DNA of 64,000 nt from Callorhinchus milii (GCF_018977255.1 NW_024704771.1:3472001-3536000); one strand, 5' to 3'; shown: positions 922 through 62,743, counted from the stretch's first letter. Made by a program: numbers and translations. The notes: a model not told the origin generated them from the sequence alone.

Positions 922-1029
922 TGAGCTTTCCAAAGAAGAGCGAGAAAAGTCCTGCGATACACAGATAGACCATCACCACAACAGTGCTTTTGAATGTTAC
1001 CTCAGCACCTGGAACATTACACTCGTTGA
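922..1029 (-). CDS. Gene A TM exon 4
   Basis: tccacag|..CTCA|GTAAGT, 108 nt; [36 protein letters not shown]. Confidence 0.85.
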
Positions 1030-4000
1030 CTGTGGACAGAATTATTATTGTCGGAATTAGACTCCAGAGATTTGTAGGTATTTACCTTGGGTTAAAGATA
1101 CAGAAATGGTGTTTCCAATGCATATCGTTTCATTTTAAATAATAAAATCAGGCAGATATCATTTTGAGTCGAGATCTGTCTGAAGGATTACTTTGTAATG
1201 GTCTTAATAATAATAATCCTTGAATTTGATACAGTGGCTTATCATGTTGTCGAGACATTTCAAAACACTTCACAGAATATACTGCAAAGTGTGGTGACTG
1301 TGTATTTTGAAGGCAAATGTAGCAGCCAACTGTGCACAACAGAGTCCAAAAACAGTCGTGGATTGAGTGACCAAATTAAAAATAAAATTTTGAAAAGCAT
1401 TTCAGAGCGCTTAACAATGGTGGAACCCACGGGGGCCACTGAAGTGGCTTTTTAGTCCCAAGAAACAGTATGGAGGACAGTGATGAGGATAATTCTCAGT
1501 ATTAATGGGATGATGGGAGGAAAATGCTTACCATTTTGTCTTGCTTCGTAAATTGGAATACACGAAACCCCAGCAGCCAAGAGTCCATACACAAGGAAAA
1601 TATTGCGATGCACTGTTCAGTGAATATAATTTGAATAAAGGAATAACAATTAGTATACCTGGGGGAATGCCTGTGAGGCATATAAACTGATGTTTTTGTC
1701 AATCTGTCAATCTATTCCTTATTTAATATAGTTTGTGGGACGCTGCTGTGCGCAATTGGCTGCCGCGTTTCGCCCACAAATATACGGTCAATTCACTTTA
1801 CAGCATATTCTGTGAAGCGCTTTGAGACTTCTAGAAGATGTGCAAAGCACTATATCAAATGCAAGGATTATTATTACTATTATAGTGCCTTATCACATCT
1901 TCGAGAAGTCTCAAAGTCTGTGTGCGAAACATGGAAAACAATTGCGCACACCCTAATCGTGGATGGAGTGACCAATTTTTTATTTAAATTCAATTAAAAT
2001 TCATTCCTCCATTTCTAACAACATTTTCCATATAGTGTGAATTTGTCGGCAAATGCGGCAGCCAATTTGTGAACAGTGAACCGGGAAAAACTCTCAGATC
2101 GATCAGAACTCGCCTCCACTGGCTCCCCATCCCCCAGAGGATAAAGTTCAAAATCCTTGTACTCACTTTCAAAGCCCCCCGTGGCCTTGCTCCTCCCTAT
2201 CTCTGTGACCTGCTAACTCCATGCCAAACTGTCCACTCCCTCCGCACACCTGCTTCACATCCCCTAATTCCAGAAAGCTTTGGGTGCAGGTAGGCAAGAG
2301 CCAAGGCTTGGCCACCCAAGAGTATGCGTTGAGGTAACTGCTGGAGTCTCACCAGCTAAAACTACATAGCTCGTCATTGATGGCGCCGTCTGGCAAGTTT
2401 TCCCACTGCTTGTCCAGCTAAGTGTGAGCCTGACTCTTGGTCTGAATCTGAGGCAATCAGGAGTCAGGATAATACCGGAATTATAAACCTCAAATATTGC
2501 AAAGTAAACTCACTGTTGTTTAACAAAAATGAGCTCGTCATTCTGGCTTCAGGATGCATGAAAAGCAGGACAGAATAAATCAGCATCACCACAACCATGA
2601 AACAACCAAATCCCGAGATAACTCTGTATTCTATTTTAAATCCTGAAAGAGGACAAATGAATAATGTGGTGAAATTGTGCAACATTAAGAATATAAGAAT
2701 TGTTGGCGAAAAAAGACCAAGGTCCATCCAGTTCGCCTTCCACCATCCTGGCAGGTATGACATGTCATGGCCCAAACTATATACTATATCCCAAGGTATT
2801 ATTTCCTAACAGAAATCTACCTAACACTTTGTTCTTGAACGCATCGACTTTCTGCTTCCACCATCTCCCTGGGAAGGCTATTATTATTTGCTCACCGAAG
2901 TAATGTTTCCAGTGATTTGTTCTGAATTTACTCCCCCCGCCCCGCCCTCAATTGCAGGCCATGGCCTCTGGTTCTACTGTCGGTATAAAACAGCATATCA
3001 TGGTCTACATTGTCCAGTCCCTTTACAATCTTAAAGACCATAACCATATCAACCTTCTCTTCTACCGCGAGAATATGCCCAGCTTACCTGATCGTTTCTC
3101 GTAGTCCAGTTCCTCAATCATTCTGGTTGCCCTCTCTGTATACACTGCAATAGTCTGATTATATAATACAAGACTACAGCCAATTATACCACTCAACCTT
3201 GCTTGTTGCATTTGTGACTAAAGTCAAATTGTTTTAAACCAGGAGACAGGTCATCAATTAAGTGATCTTTCAATGCAGTAATAACAACATTGATAATAAT
3301 CCTTGCATTTGATATAGGGCTTTATCATGTCTCCGAGATGTCTCAAAGCACTTCTATACTGTCAAAAGAATTGACTGCGTGTTTTGTGGACAAACGGGGC
3401 AGCCAATTAGGCACAGCAGTGTCCCGCAGTCATGGATTGAGTGACCAAATTATTATTTTTTGAAGGGATTATTAACCTCAGAAAGTGATCCACCTATCAA
3501 CTTCCAACCGGGTTCCTTACTGCTAGGTAAACAGAGGTGTGTGGAAACTTCCCTAAGGTTTCGGGCTGCCCAGGAATCGAACCCGAGTCCTCTCACCAAT
3601 ACGCTACAGGTCTCCATATGAATGCTCTTTTCAAGGCAGTAATAAAAGTTTCATTGCACCATCTCAACATGTAGAATTTTTGTCAACACCCATTTTTCTG
3701 TTTTCCATAAGATTACCCTCTAAACTACCACTGCAAATGTTACAGAATAGAACTCTGTAGCTTTGATATCTAGTCTGTTCCAATGATAAATAATAATAAT
3801 AATTTGGTCACTCAATCCACAACTGCTTGTGGGACACTGCTATGTGCCACTGGTTGCCTCATTTCGCCCACAAAGTATACAGTCAATTCCTTTTACAGTA
3901 TATTCTGTGAAGTGCTTTGAGACATCTCAACGAGTTAAGGCGCTGTATCACATGCAAAGATTATTGTTATTATTCGTGATAGCTCATGGACATGCGGAAT

Positions 4001-7000
4001 AAATGAGGAATCTATTTAGCAGAATAATTTGATGTAAAAGACTTTCTACATGTAGTTTGGCATTAGATAAGTATGATAGAAACAAGGTTGAGTTGTGAAT
4101 TTAAAACTCTTTAAAAACAAGGAACATACCTTCGGCTATCACGCAGAAAAGAGATGACATTAATAGGCTGATCATGGAGATTAGATGAAGGAGCATAAAA
4201 ATAGTAGTAAACTGCATGTGGCGTTTGTGAACTATGAATTCAAACAAACAAAATAAATCCTTTCGTAGCGATCTGAACTGACTATTAAATTCTTCCAATC
4301 AAATATGCAATGTATCTATGAACTTATAATGTAAGTGATCCAAAAATCATTTATATAAGCCTTGAATTTGATATAGTGCCTTGTCATGTTTTCGAGACAT
4401 CTCAAAGTGCTTCACAGAATATACTGTAAAGTGAATATTTTGAGGGCCAAATGTGGCAGCCAATTGCGCACAGCAGCAACCCACAAACAGTCGTGGATTG
4501 AGTGACCAAATTATTATTGCTTATTTTGTTTTTTTGTAGGGATTATTACCCCTGGGAAAAGCAATCCACCAATCTACTAACAACCGGGTTCCTCTTACTG
4601 CTGGGTAAACAGAGATGTGTGTAGTAAGTAAACTTGCCCAACGTTTTGCCCTGCCCAGGAATCAAACCAGGACCTCCCGCTTGCAAGGTGAGTGCTCTAA
4701 CCACTGAGCTACATGAACTATGAACTTGTAATGTAAGTGATTGAAAAAGCATTTATTACCTTGGAAATGTTTTAAGGCAAACAGCATTATGAAGAAATGT
4801 GCACCTAAGGTTGTGAGATTACTAACCAGTGAAAGGACACTGGCAGTAAGAGCATGTTGGTAAATAAACAGCGCATCTGAAACAAAGAATAATGTAAATT
4901 AAAACTCATTTTAAAATCTGACTGGCAAATGGAAAACTGTATTAGAACAACAGCGTATATAGCGCCCCTCAAGTAGGGAAGCATCCCATAGCGCTTGACA
5001 ATGGTGGAGCACAACGTCAAGCTGGGGGAGGTGACCTTAAACATGATCTTCAGGCGCGACCTGAAGGTGGGGAAGGAAGGGGCAAGGCGGAGTGATAGAG
5101 GGAAGAGTATTCCAGAATTTCGGGTGTAGCGGCTGAATGTGATCCGCCAATCAACTAACTGCTTACTGCTAAGTAAAGAGAGACAAGTGGAGTAGGGAAA
5201 CTTGTTCAAGATTGTTCCACCCGGGAATGGAACCCGGGTCCTCTCGCTTTCGAGGCAACCTCTGCATACTTTGCAGTATGTTCTGTGAAGCGCTTTGGGA
5301 CGTCCTCCCGACGTGAAAAGCGCTATATCAAATGCAAGGATTATTATTATTATTATAACCTCTCGAACCAATACTCTACAGGACTCCACCTGTAGAATGA
5401 CTTACACCTGGAAGCTTGTTGTTTAATCCGATGTGATTGCAATTTGCTGTAATGTGACTGGAATGAATTGATCCTTGACCGTTGCCAAATCAACAGATAA
5501 TAGTAATCCTTGCATTTGATATAGTGCCTTATCACATTTTCAAGACATCGCAAAGCACTTCACAGAATATGATGTGACGTGAATTGATTGTATGTTTTGG
5601 GGGTGAAATGCAGCAGCCAATTGAGCACAGCCATGTGCCACAAACATTGAATTCATTTTTTTTTTAAAAAAGGTATTATTACCCCCGGAAAGGTGATCCA
5701 CCAATCGACTAACAACTGGGTTCCTACTTACTGCTAGGTAAACAGAGCAGTGTGGAGTAAAGAAACATGCTCAATGTTTTGCCCTGCCTGGGAATCATAC
5801 TCAGGTATTCTCAGTTGCAAGGGGAATGATCTACGCACTATGCTATAGGATATATAAATCGGACAGTTACGAATCCTACCGTTGATAATGAGGAAATAGG
5901 AGTGGTTGTTCTGGCTAACGGCATTTTTGATATGGCATGTGTACCAGCCGCAGTCGGAGAATCTTACGTTATTCAGGATCAACGTGCTCTCACGCACTTC
6001 TTTACTGATTTTCACATTTTGCTTCGTCCACCAAATTTCATCTGCCGTTCCACTGTTCAGAATACAGCTCAGTGCAACCGTCTTAATGACGTAGGTGGGA
6101 TCTTGCAATATTATTGGTGTGGACAATATGTCTATGGAGGGGAAAAAATAAGTCAGATTGTCTGCAAAATCAGTGGACAGGAAACCCAATATGTAAAGCT
6201 TTTGCCTGTATTTAGCCTCAGTGTGGCTGAATGGTGGTTTGCCACAATTTTTGGGGTCAGCCAGGTGTCTGACATATATATGTATAACCTTGTTAAAAAG
6301 AACTTGACCATGGATTTCTGTACATAACGCAACTTGCATTTATATAGCACCCCTCATGCAGGGAAGCATCCCAGAGCACTTGACAGTGGTACAACCTGCT
6401 GCCCAGCTGTGCAGAGGGGGGAGGTGACCATAGGCACGGTCGAAAAGGAAGGTCTTCAGGTGAGACCTGAAGATGGGAAGGAAAGGGCAAGGTGGAAGGA
6501 TTGAGAAAGAGTGTTCCAGAGTTTTGGGGTCTAGTGGCTGAAAGTGCAGGCATTGATGGTGGAAAGGAGGGCATGAGGGACAAGTAGGAGGCTGGAGCCA
6601 GTCGATCGGATGCAATGGGTAGTGGATTGGGGAGCAAGCAGGTTGGAGAGGTAGGGAGATGCCAGGGCATGAAGGGATTTGAAGACGAGTGTCTTAAAGA
6701 TCTCTTGGTTCAAGTATTTTTCCAGTACACACACCATTGGAAATGACTGGAATCAAGAGATGTATAAGTTTCCAGACCAATCGTTAGCCCTCAGTGTGGC
6801 TGAATGGTGGTTTGCCACAATTGTTGGGGTCAGCCGGGTGTCTGACATATGCAGAAACCCATCACTGTTGCTTAAGAGTCTCCAAACCAAGCTGAGAGTT
6901 TTATGCATCCCACCTGCATATTGAAATCCCGGAGATAGATTGTTGGAATGGAGTGCATTCTCTCTCCCTGGAGGGAGGCATTCCGCTGCCCTAATTCTGG

Positions 7001-9594
7001 AAGGTATTAGGCGTAGCTCGGCAGGAGTCAGGACTTGGGGAGACCCCAGCGTGTGTGTTGTGATAACTGCTGGAGTGTACCCAGCTAAAACCGCATAGTT
7101 TGCCCTTGATAGTACTGTCGCTTGCCCTACGAGCCCAATAATCTATTTAGCCAGGTATTTTCTGTATTCATTCTCAAAGTTTAGGCGTTAGCTCTTATCT
7201 GACTAACACAGTCTGGAAACTTATGCATCTGGAAACAACACACACAATATATACGTATAAAAAATATTACATAGGGTGGAGGATTTCAAGATGCCAGCAC
7301 ACGATTGGGAAAAAAATGCTTAGAAATAAGGCACGGTCCATTACACCAGTAAGACTTACCTTCAACTTGCAGGTGTATATAGTGCAGGTGGGTAACCACG
7401 CTCTCTCCCGTTTCAGAAAGTCGGTGTTTACTCAACAAATAAATCCCAGAGTCTTTGATTTCTAAATGTTTTATTTGAAGAGATCCCAACTTTTGATCAA
7501 AATGTATTCGTAGTTTGTAATATGTATTGTAAGTATGATGGGCACTGACTGTATCGAAGCTCACAATTTGTATCATTCCATAGCGCGTGAGATAGTACCA
7601 ATCAAGTGTTTCCTCTTCAGTAATGATTGTTGTATCAATTCCAGGCAATAAAATGGAAGAATGCGTACTTGTAGCAAGGTAAAGTCGAGTTAATATTTCT
7701 GACTCACCTGAAATATTCACAAGAATTCATCAGTTAATTTTGCAACAAATAATAACTTGACAACTATATTATTTGGTGTGAAAATGAATTCAAAACCATA
7801 CACAATAACAACCTCGCATTTGATATAATTCCTTATCACGTCGTTGAGACGTCTCAAAGCGCTTCACAGGATATACTGTAAAGTGGATTGACCGTATTTT
7901 GAGGGTGGAACGCTAAATCTAAAATATGTAAATATAAAAAATATTACATAAGGTGGAGGATTTCACGATGCCCGCACATGACTGGGAAAAAATGCTTTAA
8001 CTTTAATATGCAATGCTAATGACGGAATGTTTCACAGAAAAAGGCGGTTCAGTCCATCAGGTTTACGCTGCCAATTCCCAACCCACAGAATCATCGAACT
8101 GTACGGCACAGGAAGCCATTCATGACTATTTGTGGGACACTGCTGTGCGCAATTTGGCCCAGAAAATGCACAGTCAATCCACTTTGCAGTATATTCCGCG
8201 AAGTGCTTTGAGATGTCTCAGCGATGTGATAAGGTGCTTTAGCAAATAATAATCAGAATCCTTGCATTTGATATAGTACCTTATCATGTTGGAGGGACAT
8301 TAAACGCAATATCCAAATTCACGCGAACCATTAATTGACCCAACGGTTACCATGAGTTGACTGTAACGCGTCACGGGACCTATTTTTGGCTTGAAGAACC
8401 GACGGTTTAAAAACAAATCTTCAAGGACTATATTCTTTCCTCCTTCAAGGCCGGGACTCGAGACCTTTCTCTTCGACCGTGCCGTCAGCTCCCCTCTCGA
8501 CTCTCTACCCCCTCCTCGCCCCCTCCCTCCCCTCACCCTGACCATCTCCCCCCTCCTCACTTCCTCCCTCCCCTCACCCTGACCGTCTCCCCCCTCCTCG
8601 CTCCATCCCTCCCCTCCCGCTGACCATCTCCCCCCTCCTCACTCCCTCCCTCCCGTCACCCTGACCATCTCCCCCCTCCTCGCTCCCTCCCTCGCCTCCC
8701 CCTGACCATCTCCCCCCTCCTCGCTCCCTCCCTCGCCTCCCCCTGACCATCTCCCCCCTCCTCGCTCCCTCCCTCCCGTCACCCTGACCATCTCCCCCCT
8801 CCTCGCTCCCTCCCTCCCCTCCCCCTGACCATCTCCCCTCTCGCTCCCTCCCTCCCCTCCCCCTGACCATCTCCCCCTCTCGCTCCCTCCCTCCCCTCCC
8901 CCTGACCATCTCCCCCTCTCGCTCCCTCCCTCCCCTCCCCCTGACCATCTCCCCCTCTCGCTCCCTCCCTCCCCTCCCCCTGACCATCTCCCCCTCCCTC
9001 CCTCCCCTCCCCCTGACCATTTCCCCCACTGATCCCGACCCAACTGTCCGGCGCCTCAGGACGTCCTCCCGACGTGAAAGGCGCTCTCTAAATGGAATCT
9101 TGTTGTTGCTGTTGTACTCTGGAATAGGTACCTAATGACCATAATAAACACAAAAATGGAGAGACACAAAAGAAATGCGAATGGGCTGTTCCCAAAGAGA
9201 GCTTCGCGGGTTACACCGCGACAGTGTACTTTGTGAGTGTTATCACAATAACCCGCTGCACAGTCAGTAACTCGGCCACTCAATCCACGGCTGTTTGCGG
9301 GGACGCCGCTGTGCTGCCGCGTTTCGCCCACAATGTAATGCAGTCGACGAATCCACTTTAAAATATACTCCGCAACAGACACCGAGACGTCCCGACGGCA
9401 AAACACATCTCTGTACGAAAACGGAAAGATTACGGTTATGGCAGTGAAGGAGGGGCGGCGCGTGGGCGACGCTTCACTCACTCACACACAGAGAGAGAGA
9501 GAGAGAGAAATAACACGCGGGTAAAGCAAGAGTTCGCCAATGTCCGCTTACCCTGAGGCGCCAGGAGGAGCAGGAGAGCGGCTGTGAGCAACAT
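922..9594 (-). CDS. Gene A (multi-exon): signal peptide-IgV(CD2/SLAM-like)-IgC2-multipass TM receptor; 3' end runs off the left edge of the window
   Basis: Seven GT-AG bounded exons joined by phase-1 introns (43+348+252+117+102+129+108 nt) splice into one stop-free frame of about 366 codons; every exon has a same-sized counterpart in genes B and C. Confidence 0.88.
2514..2642 (-). CDS. Gene A TM exon 3
   Basis: tttcag|..AACA|GTGAGT, 129 nt; [43 protein letters not shown]. Confidence 0.85.
4130..4231 (-). CDS. Gene A TM exon 2
   Basis: tcatag|..GAAG|GTATGT, 102 nt; [34 protein letters not shown]. Confidence 0.85.
4355..4715 (-). mobile_element. Same SINE, older long variant (dozens of other full or partial copies, e.g. 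690-870, 3290-3615, 19265-19580, 46620-46985, 56310-56650, 61050-61445)
   Basis: Retains the central ccaccaatc..gggttcc..tactgct.ggtaaacag segment. Confidence 0.8.
4760..4876 (-). CDS. Gene A TM exon 1
   Basis: tttcag|..CAAG|GTAATA, 117 nt; [39 protein letters not shown] (manual translation). Confidence 0.85.
5880..6131 (-). CDS. Gene A IgC2 exon
   Basis: ccatag| acceptor, AACG|GTAGG donor, 252 nt; LSC..IWW..TLIL..DCGWYTC..N.VS. Confidence 0.9.
7360..7707 (-). CDS. Gene A IgV exon (CD2/SLAM/CEACAM-N type, no B-F disulfide)
   Basis: ttcag| acceptor, GAAG|GTAAGT donor, 348 nt; SILLPG..LDWYY..RIHF..GSLQI..DSGIYLL..LQVE, with Leu at both canonical Cys positions. Confidence 0.9.
8520..9020. repeat. 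Pyrimidine-rich minisatellite of about 40-45 bp units (ccctgaccatctccccc..cgctccctccc) inside an L2-derived element
   Basis: About 12 imperfect tandem units seen directly. Confidence 0.9.
9552..9594 (-). CDS. Gene A exon 1, signal peptide [14 protein letters not shown](G)
   Basis: ATG at 9594, hydrophobic leader, donor CAG G|GTAAGC in phase 1. Confidence 0.85.
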
Positions 9595-10175
9595 TCCCGC
9601 TGCCTGACTCCAGGGCGAGGGACAAGTCACAAGATGGCGCCCAACGGCAACTCCGCCCTTTTAACGGCCACAGTTCAAAACGAAAGACAAACAAAGCGGC
9701 GACTGGCGCCGCTGTCCGGCTCTCTGGCCCCCGCCCGCCCCGCCCGCCCGGGGGCCGCTCGCTCGGTAACGCCGACTCCGCCCGTTCCGCCGCCTTCAGT
9801 TCGGCTCCGAAGCCGCTTCTCCTTCGCCTCTGACAACGGTGTCAGTTTGTCCGCCTCCCGTCCCCCCCCCGCTCACTCACTCACTGCGCAGGCGCCGACC
9901 TCCCGTCCCCCCGCGCTCACTCACTGCGCAGGCGCCGCATCGCCCGTCCCCACGCGCTCACTCACTCACTCACTGCGCAGGCGCCGCACCGCCCGTCCCC
10001 GCGCTCACTCACTGCGCAGGCGCTGCACCGCCCGTCCCCACGCGCTCACTCACTCACTGCGCAGGCGCCGCACCGCCCGTCCCCACGCGCTCACTCACTC
10101 ACTCACTGCGCAGGCGCCGCACCTCCCGTCCCCCCCCCCGCGCTCACTCACTCACTGCGCAGGCGCCGCACAGCC
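9595..10175 (-). promoter_or_regulatory. CpG-island promoter of gene A with YY1 motif, GC boxes and 7 NRF1-motif repeat units
   Basis: CAAGATGGCG at 9630-9639 (YY1 consensus); CCGCCC runs at 9730-9750; TGCGCAGGCGC x7 in 9885-10166. Confidence 0.75.
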
Positions 10176-12413: not shown

Positions 12414-12466
<53 letters not shown>

Positions 12467-13428: not shown

Positions 13429-13946
13429 ATATATAATAATAATCCTTGCATTTGATATAGCGCTTTTCACGTCGGGAGGACGTCCCAAAGCGCTTCACAG
13501 AATATACTGTAAAGTGAATTGACTGTATATTTGTGGGCGAACGCGGCAGCCAATTGTGCACAGCAATGTCCCACAAACAGTTGTAGATTGAAAATGACCA
13601 ATTTATTATTGTTTTGGGTTTTTGGAGGGATTATTATTAGGCTCTGTGTGGAGTAAGGAAACTTGCCCAAGGTTTCGCCCTGCCTGGAATATAATATTAT
13701 CCTTGCATTTGATATAGCACCTTGTTGTGTCTCAAAGCCCTTGAAAGAATATGTTGTGAATAATAATAAATAATATTGTATAATAAATATATTGTAAAGT
13801 GGATTGACTTTGTGTTTTATGCGTGAAATAGTCACAAAGAAAAATAGAAATTGATTTTTCTTATAGTCTTGGGACGTCCTCCTAATGTGAAAGGCATTAA
13901 ATGTAAATTTCTATCATAATATCAAATGTATAGTAAGATTCCATAC

Positions 13947-45865: not shown

Positions 45866-45973
45866 TGATCTTTGCAAAAAAGAGAAGGAATATTCCAAAG
45901 GTAGAAATATAGATTATGATTGCAAACGCATTTTGCATTGCTAACTCAGTGCTTAGAATATTGCAATCTAGAA
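45866..45973 (-). CDS. Gene C TM exon 4
   Basis: tccacag|..ATCA|GTAAGT, 108 nt; [36 protein letters not shown]. Confidence 0.85.
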
Positions 45974-51900: not shown

Positions 51901-54900
51901 TATTTTGTGTGTTGTCTCTGTGTGGTGGTGTACTGGGATTCATACACATATATTAATAACCTGGATCCGCAGACCCAAGTAAAGGTAGTTACATTTGTGG
52001 ACGGCAAAAGAACCAGAGAGGAGATTCACTTTACAGTATATTTTGTGAAGCAGTTTGAGACGTTTCAACAAAGTCTTTCACTTGTAAGGTGAGCGCTCTA
52101 ACACTGTGCTACAAAATATACATGTCCTCGTTCTTCTCCTTTCTGTCCTGATTACATATTCTCCCATCTCGAGGTCTGAACAATTGCATCCTTGAGCTCG
52201 ATGAAAGGATATCCCGAGGCAAACGTAGGCAGGCTTGTGAATCAGATTAAGGACAGGGAAGAGGAGTTAAAAACATATAAAGGAAGAAATGCTTGGACAA
52301 ATGGAGTCGCCATACAGGGTCAACGCGTTTCCCAGTGGAATTGGGTAATATCGATTTTACTGCGTCGATTGTCTCAGTTTGAAAAATAAGGTTGGCTAAT
52401 CTGCTGAATGTTTGCGTTGCTTACTTAATAAACTTTGGACTATTACCCAACAAATTGGTGGTCTCCTCCTGAATCTGTTACAGCGTCACATCAATTGCAA
52501 AGATTATTATTATATAGAGCCTCATTCCATAAGAATTTGGTGCCATAAGAACTAAAGTACAGTATATCAGACCATCCCATAGTACCTTGGTACCTTGGTT
52601 CAATTTTCCGGTAGGGCAAAATGTTAAACAAGTCTCATTACTCCACACGCCACTGTTTACCTAACTGTAAGTAGGAGCCCAGCTGTTAGTGAATTGGGGG
52701 ATCATTTTCCGGAAATAATCCTTTCCAAATCAATAAATAATTCAGTAAAATAATAATAATAATTTGGTTACTCAATCCACAACTGTTTGTGGGACACTGC
52801 TATGCATAATTGGCTGCTGTGTTTTGCCCACATATTATACAGCCAATTCACTTCACAGTATAGTCTGCGAATTGCTTTGAGACTTCTCAATGATGTGAAA
52901 AGGTACTATATCAAATGTAAGGATTATTATTATTATTATAAAATCAAATGGTTACAAAACCTACCGTTGACAACAAGAAAGTGGGAATAGTTTCTCTGGC
53001 TGATGGAGTTTTTAACGTAGCACATGTACAAACCACAGTCTGAGAGTTTTGCATTTTGAATAATATATCTGTTTTGTTTTTTTCTTTTGTTTGTAAGTTG
53101 TATCCCTTTGTGTGTCCACCAAACAATGTCAGGCTTCCCACTTTTGACGATACAGTTCATCTCAACAACTTTTGTTACATAGTCGGGTTCTTGAATTATC
53201 AGTGGCCTTGATAATTTTTCTATTGAAATAAATAGTTTCACTTAGAGGTGCTAAAGATGTTTGATTCTGAAAATTACATTTTCAATTATCAACAACAACC
53301 AATTACATTTACACAGCGCCTTTCACGTTGGGAGGATGTCCAAGGTACTCGACAGTCAGAGATTTGGACCCGAGTAGGGAGTCGGGATCAGGAGGGCAGC
53401 GAGGTGGGGTAGGAGGGTGACCGACGGCGGACCCCCATCTCACCAGTTCTGGCCGGGCTCCACTGGTTCCCCATCACCGAATGGATCCACTTCAGGATCC
53501 TCACACTCGTGTTCAACTTCACTCCCTGCACCTCCCTACCTCTCCGACCTCCTCACTCTCCAATCTGGCACCTCCACTTGGCTGGCACTTGTCCCTTGCA
53601 TCCTCAGCTCCACTATTGGAGGTCATGCATTCAGCCACTATGCCCTAAAACTCGGTAACATCCTCCCTCAATCCCTCCACTTCGCCTCCCCTTTTTCAGA
53701 TCCCACCTGAAAAACTTCCTTTTCAACTGTGATTACGGTCACCTCTCCCCCCAGCTCTGAGTCAGGCTCTGCCACTCTGAGATGATACTCTGCATGGAGG
53801 GCACTATATAAGTGCAAGTTGTCATTGTCAAAGAGAAGGGTGTTGAGATGGGCCTTGAAGGAGGCAAGAGAGGTAGCAAGGCGAAGGGACCTCGGGATGG
53901 AATTAAAAAGGCACATTGCAAATTCAGCAAATCAGAATCCTAATGCCAGTTGCAGGTTATTACAATTAATAATAATTCTTCCATTTGATATAGACTTTCA
54001 CATCAAGAGGTCAGAAATTTGCACACAGCAAAGTCCCACAAAGCCATGAATTGAATGACCAACTTTTATGTGTGGGGATAGAATGCTGGGGGACTGTTGA
54101 CGAAGACATGGGAGACATGCGCTTCTCTTTTTGAATAGTGCCATGTGATCTTTAACATCCACCTGAACAGGCAGATGAGAAATTGTATTTATATAGCACC
54201 TTTCGTTTCCGGAGGATGTCCCAAAGCCCTGGACAGTTGAGGATTGATACAAGAGCTGGGGATGGGAAGATGACCAAAGGAACTGTCAAAAAGGAAGGCC
54301 TTGAGATGGAACTTGAGGAAGTGAGGGAAGGGACAAGGTGAAGGGACTGTGGGATGGAGTTCCAGAGAGTGGGGTCAGAAAGCCTGAATGTCTGTCTGCT
54401 ATGGGGGGGAAGGGAGGGGTAGGAGACCTGATGCAAGCCAATATGGAAAATGACTGTTTCCTGAGGTTTGTGGTCCTGCATTGGTTACAGCACTGGAGGA
54501 CCTGTGTCCTGGACAGGGAAGTTATTAGGCAACATTCGGCAAGTTTCCCTACTCCACACACCTATGTTTACCTTGCAGTAAGCAGGAACCTGGTTAGTGG
54601 TTGAGTGTCACATCTCTTTCTGGAGGAAATGAACACTTCAAAATGTTTTAAAAATATCAATCTAAATTCACGACTGTTTGTGGGACACTGCTATACACAA
54701 TTGGCTGCCACATTTCTCCAACAAAATATACAACAACAACAACAAAATTTGTATAGCACATTGCATGTCAGGAGGACGTCCCAAGATGCTGGACAGTCAG
54801 TGTTTTGGATGCAGTCAATTCACTTTACAGTATATTCTGTGAATCACTTTGAGAACATCTCGAAGGCATGATAAGGCGCTATATCAAATGCAAGGATGAT

Positions 54901-57555
54901 TATTATTTATTTTCTTGAAAGTCAGAAACGTTGTTGCCTACAGTTCTGTGAAAAAGTGTTCACTATGTTTCTGTTGCTGATGGAGACCAGAGCAAAGTTT
55001 ACAAACTTGAAGTCACAAACCAAAGGTCAAATACAACAAACCCAATTCTGGAAATATACAATATCAAGAAAGCAAACAGAATCACAACACATTATTTCAC
55101 TGCAGCAGTCAGCAATGCACCATGTGGTTCAATATGGCTAAATGACACTAGATACATAGGAACAGGAGGCCATTCAGTACCTTGAGCCTGTTCCGCCAGT
55201 CCATAAAATCATTGCTAATCTGTACCTCAACTCCAATTACAACAACAAATTACACTTGTATTGCGCCCTTCACGTAAGACAGATGTCCCAGGACGCTGGA
55301 CAATCTGAGTTTTTGGACCCGAGCTGGGAGTTGAGGTCAGAAGGGGAGGAGGGCAAGGGTTGGTGGGAGGGGGACTGAAGGTACAATCGAAGAGAAAAGT
55401 CTTCTGATGACACTTGGAGGAGGCAAGAGATGGGCTGAGGCATGGGTTTGTGGGATAGAGTTCCAGAGTGTGGGGGCAGAGATGCTGTATGTCTGACTGC
55501 CAATGGGGAGCAAGAAGCATGGGGGGACCTGAACAGGCCACCGAGCGGAGGGACAAATTATCCACATTTGAGGCAAATTACCTGCATTTGCTCCGTAGCT
55601 CTTGATACCCTGACCTAACAAAAATCTATCAACCTCAGTCTTAAACATTTGAACGGATCCAGCATCCACAGCCTTTTGGTGGAGAGAGTTCCAGATTTTT
55701 GCTCCCCTTCGTGTGAGAAAATCCTTCCTGATTTCACTCCTGTCAATTGCTTCCCATAAAAATAAGTTCAAAAGAATACTTAGCGATTGAGAATTCCAGT
55801 GAAAGGAAGCAAAGAGAACTTACCTTCAACATGTAAGTATCTATAGTAGAAATTAGCAATTTTCTTTTCGTCTTCTGCTTTTTTCGCTAAATCAAGCAGG
55901 TAAGGGCCAGTGTCCGCTTCTTTTAAGCGTTGCAGTATGAGAGATCCACTGGTTGAATTTATCAGTATTCGATTTTGGTAATAAGCGTTAACTTCAACTT
56001 GAGAAGAATTGTATTCATACTTCAGAATAATTGTCTTTTTGACAGGAGTGAGATAGTACCAAATGATCACGTCGTCTGTTGTGAATTGCCTATGTACAAT
56101 TCCAGGTAGTGAGATGAAAGAACGTGCAGCAGCAAAAATATAATTGAGGGTTGTGTTTTCAGAAGTCGCTGAAACATTGGCAAGAAAATTAATTAACATC
56201 AAATGAGTTCATTGCTTTCCGTAAAAAAGGTCAAAAGAATACTTAGCGATTGAGAATTCCAAGATGCAGTCCAGTGGAAGGAAGCAAAACAAATTTATTA
56301 TTTAAACATAATAATACTTTCATTTGCTATAGCTCCTTACCATGTCATTGAGACATCTCAAAGAGCTTCACCAAATATACTGTAAAGGGGATTGGCTGTA
56401 TATTTTTGCGTGAAACTCGGCAGCCAATTCCCCAAAGCAGTGGCCCACAAACAGTCATGGATTGAGTGACCTAATTATTAGTTTTTGAAGGAATTATTAC
56501 CCCTGAAAGAAATCCACTAATCGACTAACATCCAGATTCCTACTTACTGTAGATAAACAGAAGTACACGGAGTAAGGAAACTTGCCTAATGTTTCGACCT
56601 ACGTGGAATCGAACAGGGGTCCGCTCGCTTGTGAGGAAAGTGCTCACAACGTTTGTGTATTTGTAATAACAAAGAAAGGGACTACTGATGTAATTTACTA
56701 AGCCAGAAAATTGTAAATTAAAGTCACAATATGATTAGGCAGAGTCAACATGGTTTTATGAAAGGGAAATTGTGTTTAACGAATCTTTTAGAGTTTTTTG
56801 AAGATGTAACCAGCAGGTTAGATAGAAGGGAACCAGTGGATAGTGTTATTAGCTTTTCAGAAGGCATTCAACAAGGTGCCACATAAAAGGTTGTTACATA
56901 AGATTACGGCACATGGAATTAAGGGTAATATATTACCATTGAACGAAGAGTGGTTAACAGGCAGAAAACAGAGAGTAGAGATAAATGGGTCCTTCTCAGA
57001 TTGGCAGGGTGTGACGAATGGAGTGCCGCAAGGATCAGTACTTTGGCCTCAACTGTTTACAGTCTACATCAATGACTTAGATGAGGAAATAAGAGCTTAA
57101 TGTATCTGAATTCACGGACGATACAAAGCTACGTGGGAAAGTAAGCTGTGAGGAAGAAACAAGGAGGATGTAAAGGGATATAGGCAGGTTAATTGAGTGG
57201 GCAAGAAGGTGGCAGTTGGAGTATAATGTGGAGAAGTGTGAAGTTATTTACCTAGTAGGAAACATAGAAAAGTGGGGGAGAGGGGAAGAGACTAGATAGT
57301 GTTAGTATTCAAAGGGATTTAGGTGTCCTTGTACCACCAATCACAGAAGGTTAGCATGTAGGTACAGCAAGCAATTAGGAAGGCTAATAGCACATTAGCG
57401 TTTATTGCAAAGGGATTAGAGTACAAGAGTAGGGAAGTCTTACTGCAATTGTATAGGGTCTTGGTGAGACCGCACCTGGAATATTGTGTGCAGTTTTGGT
57501 CTCCTTATCTTGGAAAGGATATACTCGCCTTAGGGTATATATATATTAGTATATG

Positions 57556-57593
<38 letters not shown>

Positions 57594-59535
57594 GGTTCAC
57601 TAGGTTGGTTCCTGGGATGAGGGGGTTGACAGATGAGAGGTTGAGTAGGTAGGCCTATATTCTCTAATATAGAAGTTAGATCTTATAGAAACCTTGGGAT
57701 TATTAAGAGTCTTGACAGGGTAGATAGTATGAGACTGTTTCCCCTGGTTGGAGAACCTAAAACTAAGAGTCATAGTCTCAGGATTAAAGGTCAGCCTTTT
57801 AGAACTGAGTTGAGAAAACATTTCTTCAGTCAGAGGGCAGTGAATTTATGAATTCTCTACCCCAGAAGGCTGTGGATGTTCAGTCATTGAATATATTCAA
57901 GACTGAGATTGATAGATTTTTAAAAACTAAAGAGATTACGGGATATGGGGATACGGCGGGTAAATAGAATTAGGTTAAAAGATCAGCCATGATCTGATTA
58001 AAGGGAAGGGTAGGCTCGAGGGGGTAAATGGTCTATTCCTGCTTCTATTTTTTATGTTCTAATTTGGGACAGGAGCACTTACCTCGCTTGAATTTTGAGG
58101 TGTTCATTTGAATACCTGACTTCAAAAGGACATTTCTGACCACTTTCAAATGTGTCAATGGATGAGACTTCTTGTTTTTGTCCTGTTCACTGATGGTAAG
58201 ATCTGATTTGATACTATCAGATAAAACTACTGTTTTATCTTGTGATGTATTAGCCCACAGGTGTGCAACTTGATTTTGAAGATTTTCCTCTGGAAATCTA
58301 GGTGATAAAACTGAAAAGTTTTCAGCACCAGAAACAAATTTATCTCTCAGAGCAACGAGCTCTGAATAACCTACAAATAAAATTTACAAACAAAAACAAT
58401 AATTGCATCGAACACAATTGCAAAAAAAGAGTGAAGTGCTTTTGGGGGGGATTTTTGGGGGTCAGCCGGTTGTCTGACACATCTGGAAATCCATCAACAT
58501 CCATCAACAGTCTCCAAAGCAAGCTGAGAATTCCTTACCTCCCACCTACACATGAAAATTTGTGGAGTCCTATAGCTCAGTGGTTTGCAAGCGAGAGACC
58601 TGAGTTCAATTCCAGGCAGAGGGCGACACCTCGGGCAAGTTTCCTTACCCCACGCAGAGCCTAATAATAATCCCTCCAAAAACAATAATAAATTGGTCAT
58701 TTTCAATCTACGACTGTTTGTGGGACATCGCTGTGCGCCATTGGCTGCCGCGTTCGCCCACAAATATACAGTCAATTCACTTTACAGTGTGTTCTGTGAA
58801 GCGCTTTGGGAAGTCCTCCCGACGTGAAAAGCGCTATATCAAATGCGAGGATTATTAATAAAATCCCAGAGATAGATTGTTGGAATGGAATGTGCGTACA
58901 CTCCCTCCCTGGAGGGACGCATTCTGATTATCTAATTCCGGAGAGGATTAATAATGATAATCCTTGCATCTGAGGCACTTGCAGCTTTGTGGGCAAAATG
59001 CGGCAGCCAATGGCGCACAGCAGCGTCCCATCGGCATTCATGGACTGAAGTGACCAATTAGTTATTTTTTTAAAAAGGAATTATTACCCCGGGAGGAGCG
59101 ATCCGCCAATCAACTAACGAGGGATTCCTACTCACCGCTAAGTAATGTGCAGTAAGGAAACTTGCCAACATGTCGCGCTGCCGGGAGTCGAACCCAGGTC
59201 TCTCGCTCGCGAGAGGAGTGCTCTGACCACTGCGCTGGAGGACCATTAGGTGCACTGCACTGACCTACGCAAAGTATGGGTTTTGGTGAAACAAAAGGCC
59301 ATTGTACAAAGCTTTATTCTACTTCTGAACACAATCATCAATTCTTCCACCTTTCAACTGTCGGTCAGTGCACTACAGACAGAATAACAACAATAAAAAA
59401 AAACACACACACATGGGGGTAACAGGACTTTGTGGACATCCTGTACTGGAGCTATGGCTGTGCTGTAGCTGTGCAGTGGCTGTGCCGCTTACCCTGAGGC
59501 GCCAGGAGGAGCAGGAGAGCGGCTGTGAGCAACAT
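45866..59535 (-). CDS. Gene C (multi-exon): signal peptide-IgV-IgC2-multipass TM receptor
   Basis: Seven exons joined by phase-1 introns (43+345+255+117+102+126+108 nt), open frame. Confidence 0.88.
47046..47171 (-). CDS. Gene C TM exon 3
   Basis: tcctag|..ACTT|GTAAGT, 126 nt; [42 protein letters not shown]. Confidence 0.85.
49150..49251 (-). CDS. Gene C TM exon 2
   Basis: ttacag|..GAAG|GTATGT, 102 nt; [34 protein letters not shown]. Confidence 0.85.
49310..50330 (-). mobile_element. L2 LINE ORF2 3' fragment
   Basis: [10 protein letters not shown] (RT motif), [21 protein letters not shown]; ataaatgtaattttgttgttg-type tail. Confidence 0.85.
51178..51294 (-). CDS. Gene C TM exon 1
   Basis: tttcag|..AAAG|GTAATA, 117 nt; [39 protein letters not shown]. 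Confidence 0.85.
52965..53219 (-). CDS. Gene C IgC2 exon
   Basis: caatag|..AACG|GTAGGT, 255 nt; MNC..VWW..DCGLYMC..NSIS. Confidence 0.9.
55824..56168 (-). CDS. Gene C IgV exon (CD2/SLAM-like)
   Basis: tttcag|..GAAG|GTAAGT, 345 nt; ISLPG..IIWYYL..RILI..GSLIL..DTGPYLL..LHVE. Confidence 0.9.
56725..58062 (+). mobile_element. CR1 LINE RT and 3' end, degenerate
   Basis: [38 protein letters not shown]. Confidence 0.85.
58565..58856 (+). mobile_element. Same SINE, young copy
   Basis: Head and tail as above, opposite orientation. Confidence 0.8.
59493..59535 (-). CDS. Gene C exon 1, signal peptide (identical to A and B)
   Basis: 43 nt, ATG at 59535, donor G|GTAAGC. Confidence 0.85.
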
Positions 59536-60076
59536 TCCCGCTGCCTGACTCCAGGGCGAGGGACAAGTCACAAGATGGCGCCCAACGGCAACTCCGCCCT
59601 TTTAACGGCCACAGTTCAAAACGAAAGACAAACAAAGCGGCGACTGGCGCCGCTGTCCGGCTCTCTGGCCCCCGCCCCGCCCCGCCCCGCCCGGGGGCCG
59701 CTCGCTCGGTAACGCCGACTCCGCCCGTTCCGCCGCCTTCAGTTCGGCTCCGAAGCCGCTTCTCCTTCGCCTCTGACAACGGTGTCAGTTTGTCCGCCTC
59801 CCGTCCCCACGCGCTCACTCACTGCGCAGGCGCCGCACCGCCCGTCCCCGCGCTCACTCACTGCGCAGGCGCCGCACCGCCCGTCCCTCCCGCGCTCACT
59901 CACTGCGCAGGCGCCGCACCGCCCGTCCCCGCGCTCACTCACTGCGCAGGCGCCGCACCGCCCGTCCCCGCGCTCACTCACTGCGCAGGCGCCGCACCGC
60001 CCGTCCCCGCGCTCACTCACTGCGCAGGCGCCGCACCGCCCGTCCCCCCCCGCGCTCACTCACTCACTCACTGCGC
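59536..60076 (-). promoter_or_regulatory. CpG-island promoter of gene C, 6 full NRF1-motif units plus one partial
   Basis: Near-identical to the A and B promoters; array 59823-60076. Confidence 0.75.
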
Positions 60077-60371
60077 TCTGACAGACTGTTGGAGCCTTTA
60101 AGCGACAAAAAATATGTTGTACAGTAAAAAAAAACAGATTTTTCTATTGAAACATTTTAAAAAAGGGCTAATGTTCTAATGGCACTTCTCAGACACACAG
60201 TAATAATAATAATAATAATAATCCCCGCATTTGATACAGTGCTTTTCACCTCTTCCTGAAAAAACAATGTTAAGTAATAAAAATAAGAAGAACAAAAAAC
60301 TAAACTTAAATGATGAGAGAAATAACATCGAATATTAAGGGAAAATAATACCAAATGATGACGAGGATAGG

Positions 60372-60513
60372 NNNNNNNNNNNNNNNNNNNNNNNNNNNNN
60401 NNNNNNNNNNNNNNNNNNNNNNNNNNNNNNNNNNNNNNNNNNNNNNNNNNNNNNNNNNNNNNNNNNNNNNNNNNNNNNNNNNNNNNNNNNNNNNNNNNNN
60501 NNNNNNNNNNNNN
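60372..60513. other. Assembly gap (142 N)
   Basis: Run of n. Confidence 1.
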
Positions 60514-62635
60514 ACGTGAAGCTGCATCTCCAGAACAAACTAATCTTTATTCCACCACCAGCACAAACACACTATTGACTTGATGAAACGGTTGGGTCCG
60601 GTCCACCCTTGAATCAGGCCCCAGTGGAAAATTTCCAATTCTTTCTGGAAGAAAGCGACTGATTTCGTTTCGGATATCTCTTCAGCGACTTTTTGCACAA
60701 AATGTTCGCTTCCGCGACGAGGTGCGCGACCCCCCCCCCCCCCCCCCCCACCACCCCCCACCCAAAGCAGTCGCAAGTTCTTCGGCACCGATGGTCAGCA
60801 TTTCCAGTCCCACAGAAAAGCGGAGAGTGGGCGGTAGGTTTGAAGTGAGACGTGAAATGAAACGACACGCACCAGATGTGCTCCTCTCCGACAGCAACCG
60901 CTCTCTACAGCAAGTGAACAAATCGGCGCATCCGGAACAGTTTGTGTTTCGGACTATTCGAGGCGTAGAATCATCGAAATTCGTAATCCTTGCATTTGAT
61001 GCCGCGCCGCACCATGGCCTCGACCTGTCTCAAAGCATTTCACAGAATATAATAATGATCCTCGCATTTGATAGAGCGCTTTTCACGTCGGGAGAGGACG
61101 TCCCAAAGCGCTTCACAGAACACACTGTAAAGCGAATTGACTGTATATTTGTGGGCGAACGCGGCAGCCAACTGCGCCCAGCAATGCCCCATAAAAAGTC
61201 GTTAATCGATTGAGTGACCCGGTTTTTTTACCAGCTTCATTTTTTAAAAAAAAACTTTGAAGGGAATATTATCCCCAGAAATTTATTCCACCAATCGACT
61301 AACAACCGGGCTCCCCGTTTATTGTTATGTAAACAGAAGCTTGTGGAGCAAGGAAACCTGTCCCACATTTCGCCCTGCCCGGGAATGAAACTCAGGTCCT
61401 CTCACTTGTGAGGTGAGTGCTCAAACCACTACACTACAGGAATCCAATAACACTTTGAAATTGATAAATATTTTCTCTGAGAATGGTAAGTTTACCTGAA
61501 TTTTACAAGTGTTGAGTCCTCCATCTTTGAATACTCCTTGGTAGATGTTCTGTCCAGAATTGCACTGTAACCAACACAGACATTCCAGGATAATAATAAT
61601 CCTTATAATAATAATAATAATAATAATATTGTGTTTGATCCTTGTGTTTGATATTGCACCGTATCATCTCAAGTCATTTGAAATTACTTCACAGGATTGT
61701 ACTGCTATCATGTCAATAATTCGAAACATTTTATGAACAATATTTTTATGATCCACTTATAAACTCAGTTTTCTGAGTTCATAGAGTATTCCTGTGAATT
61801 TTTTGTGATGTATTTTCCTTCAATCGGAAAGATTAGATTGGGGTTGACAATTCCTAAAACAACAAAAGTGAAGTTGAATTTTTTTCTACACAAAGAGAAA
61901 GAGAAATTCATTCACATTTTCCTGTCTTCTCTCCATATTTTTTTAGATATCGATCTAGTTTCCTTCGTCAACCACTGCATTTCACATCTTGACAACTCTG
62001 TGCAAAAACAAAACCTTCCTCATCTCACCATTAGGAGATGCCAGAGGATCTGTATTTCTAATGGAGGAAATTGTAGGACAGGTACATCTTGGGTATTTGT
62101 AAGAAACAGCACTTTTACACTCTGCTCTTCTTGAAAGATCAGTTCAGAGTTGGAATTTGACTGTCTTAGTCTATATATTTTGTTATATATTTATATATCA
62201 CTTGTTAACATAACTGATCCACATAGCGCATTACCACATCTTCAAGACATCAAAGAGCTTATATTGTAAAATGAATTGACTGTGTATTTTGTGGGCAATA
62301 TGTGGGAGCAGCCAACTGTACACAGCAAACAGTTGTGGATTGAGTGACCAATTTTTTTCCCCCCTTGGCTAAATGAGATAATTTACTANTTTTTTCCTGG
62401 CCAAATAAAATAATTTACTATTATCTTACATGATACAATCTTGTAGTTATCGTACATCACCAAGAACTATTATACAAAATATTTGTGGAAGTTCAAAGTC
62501 AAAAAGGTCACAGTAAATTTTACATTTAGTAAAAACGGAACATATTAGAATTCTCAGTCACAGCAGCAAATTAAATAATTATTTAATACTTTTTTTTTTA
62601 GTTCTGTTACTCACAATATCTGTGTGTTTACTTAC

Positions 62636-62743
62636 CGAGCCGTCCGCAAAGCAGACCTAATAGTCCAATGATAGACAGATACACAAGTCCTGCAAGAGTG
62701 CTTCTCAATGCAAGCCGTTGACCTGGAATGTTACATTTTACAA
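62636..62743 (-). CDS. Gene D TM exon 4 (fourth paralog; upstream exons lie beyond 64000)
   Basis: tctacag|..CTCG|GTAAGT, 108 nt; xVKCNIPGQRLALRSTLAGLVYLSIIGLLGLLCGRL, homologous to the 108-nt exons of A, B and C. Confidence 0.8.

Follow-up and report, generated by a model that had tools for sequence, protein, structure and literature searches.

Recognition receptors of the immunoglobulin superfamily (IgSF) are nearly always single-pass or lipid-anchored. The textbook exceptions are CD47, the human "don't-eat-me" protein, and the SKINTs, and to our knowledge the origin of the odd membrane domain of CD47 is not known. In CD47, the Ig domain is placed directly before five transmembrane (TM) helices, with a Cys33–Cys263 pair, and the human gene has one exon per helix and constant exons 1–7 (PMC10902115). 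A comparable layout was seen in a 64,000-nt stretch of Callorhinchus milii DNA (the window). The window probably carries three complete paralogs in tandem, together with the 3' portion of a fourth gene, which would belong to a family specific to cartilaginous fish and encode surface proteins composed of a V domain, a C2 domain and five TM helices (V-C2-5TM). The V-C2-5TM family is unnamed and unstudied, and its members are unnamed or misnamed.

Gene cluster and membrane module

Genes A, B and C and one exon of gene D are arranged head to tail on the minus strand of the window. The initial annotation had described three paralogs and one fourth-gene exon on this strand, and all of its exons were found again, with the intact splice sites that it had reported (AG...GT around every internal exon). 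Its hydrophobic exon lengths of 117/102/126–129/108 nt agree with the measured 117/102/129-129-126/108 nt (third exon in the order A-B-C). However, it had counted four hydrophobic exons and the actual number is five, because an 81-nt exon was overlooked between its third and fourth. The features are as follows.

9552–9594, minus strand, gene A leader: start codon and 14-residue signal peptide, ending in phase 1; 43 nt, then GTAAGC
7360–7707, minus strand, gene A IgV: 348 nt, no Cys; AG/GT, phase 1
5880–6131, minus strand, gene A IgC2: 252 nt, spare Cys in SDC motif; AG/GT, phase 1
4760–4876, minus strand, gene A TM1: 117 nt
4130–4231, minus strand, gene A TM2: 102 nt
2514–2642, minus strand, gene A TM3: 129 nt
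1532–1612, minus strand, gene A TM4: 81 nt, newly added
922–1029, minus strand, gene A TM5: 108 nt, outer loop before it has a Cys; donor GT next
40036–40078, minus strand, gene B leader: 43-nt coding stretch identical to A and C
35303–35635, minus strand, gene B possible extra N-terminal V exon: 333 nt, phase 1-1, candidate
30076–30429, minus strand, gene B IgV: 354 nt, no Cys
26653–26919, minus strand, gene B IgC2: 267 nt
24203–24319, minus strand, gene B TM1: 117 nt
23957–24058, minus strand, gene B TM2: 102 nt, 144 nt from TM1
19977–20105, minus strand, gene B TM3: 129 nt
19105–19185, minus strand, gene B TM4: 81 nt, newly added
18329–18436, minus strand, gene B TM5: 108 nt
59493–59535, minus strand, gene C leader: 43-nt coding stretch identical to A and B
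55824–56168, minus strand, gene C IgV: 345 nt, no Cys
52965–53219, minus strand, gene C IgC2: 255 nt
51178–51294, minus strand, gene C TM1: 117 nt
49150–49251, minus strand, gene C TM2: 102 nt
47046–47171, minus strand, gene C TM3: 126 nt
46441–46521, minus strand, gene C TM4: 81 nt, newly added
45866–45973, minus strand, gene C TM5: 108 nt
62636–62743, minus strand, gene D TM5: 108 nt, 43% identical to TM5 of gene A; remainder of gene D beyond the window end
9857–10175, no strand, minisatellite on the gene A side: 7 units of ~45 bp, each with GCGCAGGCGC
40423–40681, no strand, minisatellite of gene B: 7 units, matches the gene A array
59824–60031, no strand, minisatellite of gene C: 6 units, matches the gene A array
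60372–60513, no strand, assembly gap (N): flanked by TM5 of gene D and the promoter of gene C

All introns of genes A, B and C are in phase 1, and the eight exons of each gene, from the leader through TM5, give stop-free spliced frames of 1,177–1,201 nt. Outside the leader, the per-exon amino-acid identity among the three paralogs is 27–58% (28–33% for the V domain) and the exon lengths are conserved. The shared leader peptide is identical to the N-terminus of C. milii UniRef A0A4W3IIQ8, and the promoter and leader blocks are 90–99% alike between paralogs at the translated level (tblastx). The minisatellite of gene A is located upstream of the leader, and the GCGCAGGCGC in every unit is one base off the NRF-1 palindrome. 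The TM5 exon runs into a donor site in all four genes, and cytoplasmic tail exons were not identified in the window. The donor GT after the gene A TM5 exon implies that the tail exons of gene A lie beyond the window start. The run of N in the assembly gap, together with a single N at 62389, touches no assigned exon; the nearest are the gene C leader, 837 nt below, and the gene D TM5 exon, 2.1 kb above. Since the gap sits at the expected position of the gene D tail exons or the D–C spacer, it bears on those only.

The TM4 exon is conserved in A, B and C with 31–54% amino-acid identity and is flanked by cag and by gtaagc or gtgagt. Its presence in all three genes makes the membrane module one of five exons (117/102/126–129/81/108 nt) and five helices. 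With TM4 included, the loop charge distribution read from the spliced sequences fits a five-TM topology of the N-out/C-in kind, and the predicted arrangement is five TM helices in the type-I orientation. Five long helices were also obtained with AlphaFold, both for the full-length shark relative P0160 (pLDDT 77) and for a TM-only model (pLDDT 76.5, pTM 0.66). The module gave no match to a Pfam family, a PDB sequence or a known fold. A cytochrome b561-like redox domain that binds haem is an extremely improbable reading of the bundle, since it has no conserved His pairs.

Ectodomain and relatives in sharks and rays

The ectodomain is CD2/SLAM-like in its domain arrangement. The disulfide-less V plus C2 arrangement proposed in the initial annotation holds, as the V exons of A, B and C are without cysteine and the C2 corresponds to Pfam Ig_3 / I-set. 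In gene A, the IgC2 matches Ig_3 with 1.5e-10, and the IgV matches V-set with 1.3e-4 and Receptor_2B4 with 3.4e-3 (18 bits vs the cut-off of 21), both under the cut-offs. The candidate V exon of gene B has an open frame between cag and gtatc, a V-set match above the cut-off (1.2e-8) and a canonical Cys pair, and it resembles PVR/CD200-type V domains. The nearest folds to the ectodomain are CD2, CD58 and CD48 (TM-score by target 0.63–0.69). Among the shark relatives, Receptor_2B4 matches 16 of 40 members (best E 4e-8). The C. milii paralog P0103 aligns with the CD48 V domain at E 0.07–0.19. A loose tyrosine-motif pattern was found in the tails of only three shark and ray relatives (P0163, P0182 and P0158), and the ITSM (TxYxxV/I) in none of the tails of these relatives, including those three.

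Genes A, B and C all carry a spare Cys in the E–F loop of C2 and another Cys in the outer loop between TM4 and TM5; the latter also occurs in gene D. Among 39 shark and ray proteins, 32 have both cysteines and five have neither; the spare Cys alone was lost in two and the loop Cys alone in none. This covariation has a Fisher value of 3.6e-5, uncorrected for relatedness, with about three independent co-losses. Since the two residues are kept or lost together, a long-range disulfide like that of CD47 is suggested, in which the spare Cys of C2 would be bonded to the TM4–TM5 loop Cys.

The searches found 66 relatives, nearly all chondrichthyan. About 60 RefSeq proteins of sharks and rays have homologous Ig domains and the layout V-C2-5TM-tail, which supports what had been postulated from the window, namely a diversified family of multipass IgSF proteins in cartilaginous fish that has no name. 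Examples of the relatives are XP_067865339-41 of Heterodontus francisci, a 'hemicentin-1-like' protein of Scyliorhinus canicula and A0A4W3IIQ8 of C. milii itself. The expectation that annotation would label such genes by the Ig part only was borne out, as the relatives are named CEACAM1-like, HEPACAM-like, CD48-like, CD2-like, hemicentin-1-like, VEGFR2-like or uncharacterized. A C2 profile run against 1.84 billion proteins returned, besides giant multi-Ig proteins, a paralog from C. milii (P0103) and a multipass protein of Heterodontus with the order V-C2-C2; P0077 is among the matches. In BLASTP, the gene A IgC2 shares 38% identity with the C2 of shark P0160 (E 2e-13) and the gene C IgV shares 33% with its V (E 3e-9). 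Isoform pairs of sharks reveal cassette TM exons of 108–114, 84–102, 123–126 and 87 nt vs 117/102/126–129/81 nt in the window. For the TM domain, the chimaera vs shark/ray comparison gave HMM scores from –7 to 12.5 bits, inside the decoy range, and a collinear hhalign alignment with E 0.014 and a probability of 1.4%. The chimaera genes form their own clade with 100/100 support.

Expression and possible products

The C2 exon of gene A was found in no public C. milii RNA run, TM1–TM2 of gene B is covered by no C. milii RNA contig, and read depth over the exon bins was ~0 in each of four RNA runs, in a search swamped by repeats. The proteins of the window are also absent from the protein databases searched. 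These results would fit silent or decaying C. milii copies of an architecture which is real in sharks and rays and not expressed here. Nevertheless, such decay is quite unlikely. The paralogs differ at 42–73% of residues per exon outside the leader, yet in each of them eight exons are still open and 15 splice sites still canonical, and the exon lengths, the pattern of hydrophobicity and the two special cysteines are maintained as well, which is not expected of pseudogenes that old. Moreover, the RNA material consisted of few C. milii runs of unstated tissue, and Logan contigs drop rare transcripts. The joining of Ig to TM exons was seen in RefSeq models of sharks and rays only, and it can be asked whether the Ig and hydrophobic exons are separate genes, or whether the normal product is single-pass, made by joining C2 directly to the last TM exon, with TM1–TM4 as rarely used cassettes. 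The short single-TM shark relatives P0186, P0190 and P0194, whose C2 leads straight into the Cys loop and the final TM, nest within the multipass clade. The length of each TM exon is divisible by 3, with phase 1, so that any of them can be skipped with the frame preserved; therefore, alternative splicing could reduce the number of helices, down to a single pass. On the other side, none of the three genes has a leader, a promoter or a terminal exon in the interval from C2 to TM1, and TM1 and TM2 of gene B are just 144 nt apart. TM1–TM4 are conserved in length and sequence across the three paralogs, and all five helices are contained in most of the shark and ray models (400–470 aa). Taken in either form, this alternative is very improbable.

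According to the preferred V-C2-5TM reading, the genes would encode type-I-oriented surface glycoproteins with a signal peptide, a disulfide-less CD2/SLAM-type V domain, a C2 domain and five TM helices. By analogy with CD2/SLAM receptors, the fast-diverging V domain may bind a partner on another cell. The putative disulfide between C2 and the loop would hold the ectodomain in place on the bundle of helices, like that of CD47, and the bundle could serve lateral association or signalling. Tyrosine signalling motifs are missing from the short tails of the shark members. Splicing out the TM cassettes would give products with fewer helices or a single pass.

Relation to CD47 and other known receptors

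The term "CD47-like" used in the initial annotation describes layout only, and common descent with CD47 is unsupported by sequence or fold searches. The layout part stood, comprising Ig beside five TM helices that each have their own exon, a Cys in the last outer loop and, in the shark members, a short tail, whereas the likeness did not extend to sequence and fold. Pfam PF04549, the CD47 TM family, matched neither single exons of the window, nor P0151, nor any TM domain in a set of 29 at a threshold as loose as E<=1, and searches of PDB sequences with a single sequence and with a profile gave nothing at E<=10. The AlphaFold and Foldseek comparison with CD47 which had been proposed was performed with the TM-only model. 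CD47 was missing from its top 50 Foldseek PDB matches, its top 30 matches in the Swiss-Prot AFDB and its top 50 VIA matches among all 48,161 PDB cluster representatives, and this absence is weak negative evidence since helical folds are poorly resolved by Foldseek and VIA.

It is doubtful that the five-TM module is truly homologous to that of CD47, both descending from a common ancestral Ig-5TM gene with CD47 as the surviving single-Ig member. Such homology would account for the same order of parts with one exon per helix (PMC10902115) and for the covariation of the loop Cys with an Ig-domain Cys, comparable to Cys33–Cys263. PF08204 (V-set_CD47) matches 7 of 40 members at E<0.01 and the membrane-proximal Ig of two members with 28–29 bits (cut-off 21), but always beneath much stronger generic Ig matches, and none of the C2 exons of the window match it. 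A TM-only language-model feature search ranks the CD47/poxvirus OPG166 cluster first, but with a score of 0.68, far under the tool's reliability level of 0.9. The GCGCAGGCGC arrays point in the same direction, as human CD47 is reported to be driven by NRF-1 (PMC11685207). The PF04549, PDB and fold searches speak against homology. The broader proposal, that CD47 is the lone bony-vertebrate survivor of an ancient Ig-5TM family kept in cartilaginous fish as a large, rapidly diversifying CD2/SLAM-type cluster, has to be regarded as unlikely. If it is true, inheritance and not convergence would explain the five-helix module, the disulfide from Ig to loop and the promoter of the NRF-1 type, and the origins of CD47 and the CD2/SLAM family would be linked.

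The V-C2-5TM family is a testable lead on the origin of CD47. With dozens of family genes per shark genome, the multipass design becomes the standard anchor of a large, tandem, fast-evolving family and not a one-off. Its natural variants, with or without the cysteine pair and with isoforms of five, four or one helix, can be used to learn what a receptor for adhesion or recognition gains from being anchored by a helix bundle. For annotation, the hemicentin-like, VEGFR2-like and CEACAM1-like labels are wrong for V-C2-5TM genes.

Among known proteins, the shark and ray V-C2-5TM proteins share with the window genes the order of parts, one cassette exon of similar size per helix, the spare C2 Cys, the loop Cys and a basic stretch after TM5. 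However, many shark members carry a second C2 domain, or an additional amphipathic segment that separates TM2 from TM3, and the TM sequences of the chimaera genes are not significantly similar to the shark/ray TM profile. The CD2/SLAM proteins (CD2, CD48, CD58, 2B4 and SLAM) also combine a V domain that lacks the canonical disulfide with a C2 behind it and form tandem gene clusters, and Pfam Receptor_2B4 and SLAM matches occur in the relatives. In contrast to the five TM exons here, they are single-pass or GPI-anchored; the tails of the shark relatives lack their ITSM, and the C2 of the window has three cysteines instead of two disulfides. SKINT and butyrophilin-like proteins are similar in the IgSF V-C ectodomain, the multipass anchor and the multigene family, but their V and C domains are of the B7 type, with the canonical disulfides, and their TM helices number about three, whereas in the window the V domain is cysteine-free and there are five TM helices. 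No sequence relation to SKINT was seen, the sole trace being a low-ranked language-model feature match. CD47 shares the Ig placed directly on a five-TM bundle, the N-out/C-in orientation, one exon per helix, a TM4–TM5 loop Cys (with a putative bond to the Ig domain in the window genes) and a CpG-rich promoter with NRF-1-like motifs. On the other hand, CD47 is a single conserved gene with one V domain, whereas the window genes are multigene, tandem and fast-diverging, and combine a disulfide-less V with C2 and possibly a third Ig domain (V) in gene B.

Gene structure and a fifth membrane exon

On the minus strand of the window, mapping gave the complete gene bodies of A, B and C and, for gene D, the last transmembrane (TM) exon only. 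The tandem Ig and hydrophobic exons described in the initial annotation are real, and one exon was added here. The leader, with 43 coding nucleotides, is identical in sequence in the three genes, is directly followed by GTAAGC, and gives a 14-residue signal peptide:

9552–9594, minus strand: leader of gene A
40036–40078, minus strand: leader of gene B
59493–59535, minus strand: leader of gene C

In genes A, B, and C, the V exon is 345–354 nt long and codes for no cysteine. The C2 exon of 252–267 nt is followed by a series of hydrophobic exons. Every internal exon has AG/GT borders, the introns are uniformly phase 1, and the spliced frames are open from end to end. The hydrophobic exon lengths proposed earlier (117/102/126–129/108 nt) were exact for the mapped exons of the three genes. 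The initial annotation had counted only these four exons. With an extracellular N-terminus, four helices would leave the C-terminus outside, which conflicts with the basic residues after the last helix. A scan of the introns for hydrophobic exons of compatible phase revealed an overlooked exon of 81 nt in the equivalent intron of A, B, and C. The 102-nt exon of gene B was also placed:

1532–1612, minus strand: TM4 exon of gene A, 81 nt
19105–19185, minus strand: TM4 exon of gene B, 81 nt
46441–46521, minus strand: TM4 exon of gene C, 81 nt
23957–24058, minus strand: 102-nt hydrophobic exon of gene B

In each gene the 81-nt exon is preceded by a good pyrimidine tract and cag as acceptor, and its donor is gtaagc or gtgagt. 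Its amino-acid identity among the paralogs is 31–54%, equal to the best of the other exons. Since it is common to A, B, and C, the membrane module is composed of five exons with one helix per exon. With five helices, the basic TM1–TM2 and TM3–TM4 loops and the tail are intracellular and the conserved cysteine immediately before the last helix is extracellular, as read from the spliced sequences. The 81-nt exon of gene D was absent from 62744–64000. Neither acceptor-anchored peptide comparison nor blastn of the downstream flanks of B, C, and D against one another revealed tail exons; the only blastn matches were SINE copies. A run of N (60372–60513) and a single N (62389) lie between the last TM exon of gene D and the promoter of gene C and touch no assigned exon. 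The gap bears only on the tail exons of gene D and on the D–C spacing.

The first intron of gene B (9.6 kb) holds a V-set exon with the canonical cysteine pair (35303–35635, minus strand), weakly PVRIG/PVR-like, with splice sites of phase 1-1 and no counterpart seen in A or C. With such splice sites, it could code for a third, N-terminal Ig domain or be part of an alternative form. Between A, B, and C, similarity is 90–100% in the blocks of promoter and leader (9480–10200, 39960–40700, and 59480–60100) and 27–58% in the coding exons. Each promoter block contains 6–7 tandem copies of a unit of about 45 bp with GCGCAGGCGC. A search for GCGCATGCGC at ≤1 mismatch gave 21 matches against 0.2 expected, and 20 of the 21 were GCGCAGGCGC in the three arrays. 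A YY1-like motif, GCCATCTTG, is close to the start site in every block. The pattern suggests that the 5′ ends of the three genes have been homogenised, that is, have undergone concerted evolution.

The window is vertebrate DNA with abundant LINE and SINE fragments. LINE reverse-transcriptase fragments lie in introns (16464–17178, 38409–39499, and 56843–57100, plus strand), and a highly repeated SINE has many intron copies (e.g. 13400–13640, 24650–24880, and 63550–63800). These repeats swamp read mapping at these genes, with depth up to 4e5. Three long open frames are built from tandem repeats: a Gly/Arg/Glu-rich one of about 39 nt (8574–9043, minus strand), a 32-residue one within a transposon-like ORF (14280–14909, plus strand), and a Pro/Ser/Leu-rich one (40663–41683, minus strand). 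They look like minisatellites, not genes.

Relatives in sharks and rays

A C2 profile built on the three genes served to search a set of 1.84 billion representative proteins. The matches were mostly giant multi-Ig proteins scoring as the sum of many weak domains, and two compact matches stood out, P0103 from C. milii and P0077 from Heterodontus francisci. P0103 (A0A4W3IIQ8) is a 254-aa UniProt entry with the leader exactly as in the window, then V and C2. It is the sole database protein of the V-C2-5TM family from C. milii, and its residues 217–254 are a read-through past the C2 donor into the intron. Therefore, the existing annotation of the cluster stops short of the TM module. The window's own proteins were not found in the databases with the paralog P0103 or the mixed alignment as queries. 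P0077 is a RefSeq protein labelled "CEACAM1-like"; its isoforms and a Scyliorhinus "hemicentin-1-like" protein run from V through two C2 and an extended multipass region to a tail.

The mixed-alignment search gave 66 proteins, all from sharks and rays save one frog protein, which matched in the Ig part only. Their labels include HEPACAM-like, CD48-like, CD2-like, VEGFR2-like, and "uncharacterized". The majority measure 400–470 aa and show about five hydrophobic segments downstream of C2; a small number, about 270 aa in length, have one TM only. Against the shark member P0160, the window exons gave E-values of 2e-13 (C2) and 3e-9 (V). The initial annotation had proposed an unnamed receptor family of cartilaginous fish that automated annotation would probably label from its Ig part, and this reading was right. 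No description of such a V-C2-5TM family was found in the literature covered, which was incomplete.

A tree of V and C2 splits into one clade with the four chimaera sequences and one with every shark/ray sequence, each with 100/100 support. The family is therefore older than the chimaera–shark split and expanded independently on both sides. Because the single-TM forms are nested within the multipass clade, a single pass seems to be the derived condition here. In the single-pass P0186 (Cetorhinus), P0190 (Carcharodon), and P0194 (Scyliorhinus), C2 is joined straight to the cysteine loop and the last TM.

The membrane modules of the two lineages were also compared. Under an HMM of 37 shark/ray TM domains, the chimaera TM domains scored no higher than shuffled decoys, and the hhalign alignment of the two sets was collinear, not significant. 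Shark exon sizes were inferred from RefSeq isoform pairs differing by clean cassette deletions.

Table. TM cassettes of sharks and TM exons of the window.
TM1: shark cassette 36–38 aa, 108–114 nt; window exon 117 nt
TM2: shark cassette 28–34 aa, 84–102 nt; window exon 102 nt
TM3: shark cassette 41–42 aa, 123–126 nt; window exon 126–129 nt
TM4: shark cassette 29 aa, 87 nt; window exon 81 nt

The gene structure of the module agrees between the lineages, with close exon sizes. Landmark residues are placed alike in both, namely a histidine where TM1 begins, a cysteine before TM5, and a lysine after TM5. TM2 ends with Glu-Gly in genes A and B and most shark members, and with Glu-Asp in gene C. Single TM cassettes are skipped in several annotated shark isoforms (P0156–P0158, P0160/P0161, P0163/P0164, P0175/P0177, P0188/P0189, P0198/P0199, and P0205/P0207). 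Such a skip would give an even helix number and flip the topology of all downstream parts. These isoforms are either non-productive forms or model artefacts, or topology-switching splice forms.

The joining of Ig and TM exons in transcripts is read indirectly, solely from the shark RefSeq isoforms; the RNA data of C. milii itself gave no support. In four RNA runs, the exon bins of gene A (900–6899) had a depth of about 0 and transposon contigs dominated. The C2 exon of gene A was in no RNA run and occurred only in four runs that also held introns and are probably DNA. For TM1–TM2 of gene B (501 nt), nothing but a spurious match of 18 nt was obtained.

Cysteine pair, predicted fold, and CD47

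The third C2 cysteine sits two residues before the Gly-x-Tyr-x-Cys motif, and another cysteine precedes TM5. Covariation of the two was counted in a 40-sequence alignment, 39 of whose members are ungapped at both sites. Of these, 32 keep the pair and 5 have substitutions at both sites (Tyr/Trp in two, Gly/Phe in one, and Ser/Arg in two); 2 lack just the C2 cysteine and none lacks just the loop cysteine (Fisher 3.6e-5, ignoring kinship). The independent co-losses number about three, and all window genes keep both cysteines. In CD47, the Cys33–Cys263 bond is required for ligand binding and signalling (PMC10902115). The pattern here is as expected for a CD47-type bond, and the C2 cysteine is probably disulfide-bonded to the loop cysteine before TM5.

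An AlphaFold2 model of P0160 from the 40-sequence alignment (pLDDT 77) showed two Ig domains and five long helices; the TM-only model gave pLDDT 76.5 and pTM 0.66. In the fold search with the whole model the Ig part dominates, and the top TM-scores by target were 0.69 for CD2, 0.67 for CD58, and 0.63 for CD48. Swiss-Prot fold matches include HEPACAM2, CLMP, 2B4, Ly9, and SLAM. A cytochrome b561 reading of the helix bundle was rejected for want of a conserved histidine set.

Kinship of the membrane module with that of CD47 has two weak leads. A feature search by language model, with the TM part as sole query, ranked the CD47/poxvirus OPG166 cluster first, but its score of 0.68 is far under the reliability level of the tool. 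In some members, the Ig domain nearest the membrane matches the Pfam CD47 Ig model (PF08204) above its cut-off, although always beneath stronger generic Ig matches. Pfam assigned no family, the CD47 TM model PF04549 included, to 29 TM domains, and PDB sequence searches with the TM part gave no match. The term CD47-like, used in the initial annotation, holds only as an analogy.

Proposed mode of action and comparison with known systems

Beyond the established architecture, topology-compatible charge pattern, and family, the members would be surface recognition or adhesion molecules. The fast-diverging CD2-type V domain may bind a partner on another cell, and the disulfide would pin the ectodomain onto the five-helix bundle. 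The output may pass through lateral contacts of the bundle, not through the tail. The tail of the shark relatives is short and has no ITSM, and a loose tyrosine-motif pattern matched three tails only. Since all TM exons are phase 1 and multiples of three, splice forms with fewer helices are possible, and such forms are annotated in sharks as RefSeq isoforms.

The family resembles CD2/SLAM in its ectodomain but has five TM helices instead of one. Its style of anchor is like that of CD47, whereas the CD47 TM family is not matched. It is not SKINT-like. By analogy, it appears to behave as a CD2/SLAM ectodomain carried by an anchor in the style of CD47 while lacking the defining marks of both families, and we rate it among the IgSF receptors with multipass anchors.
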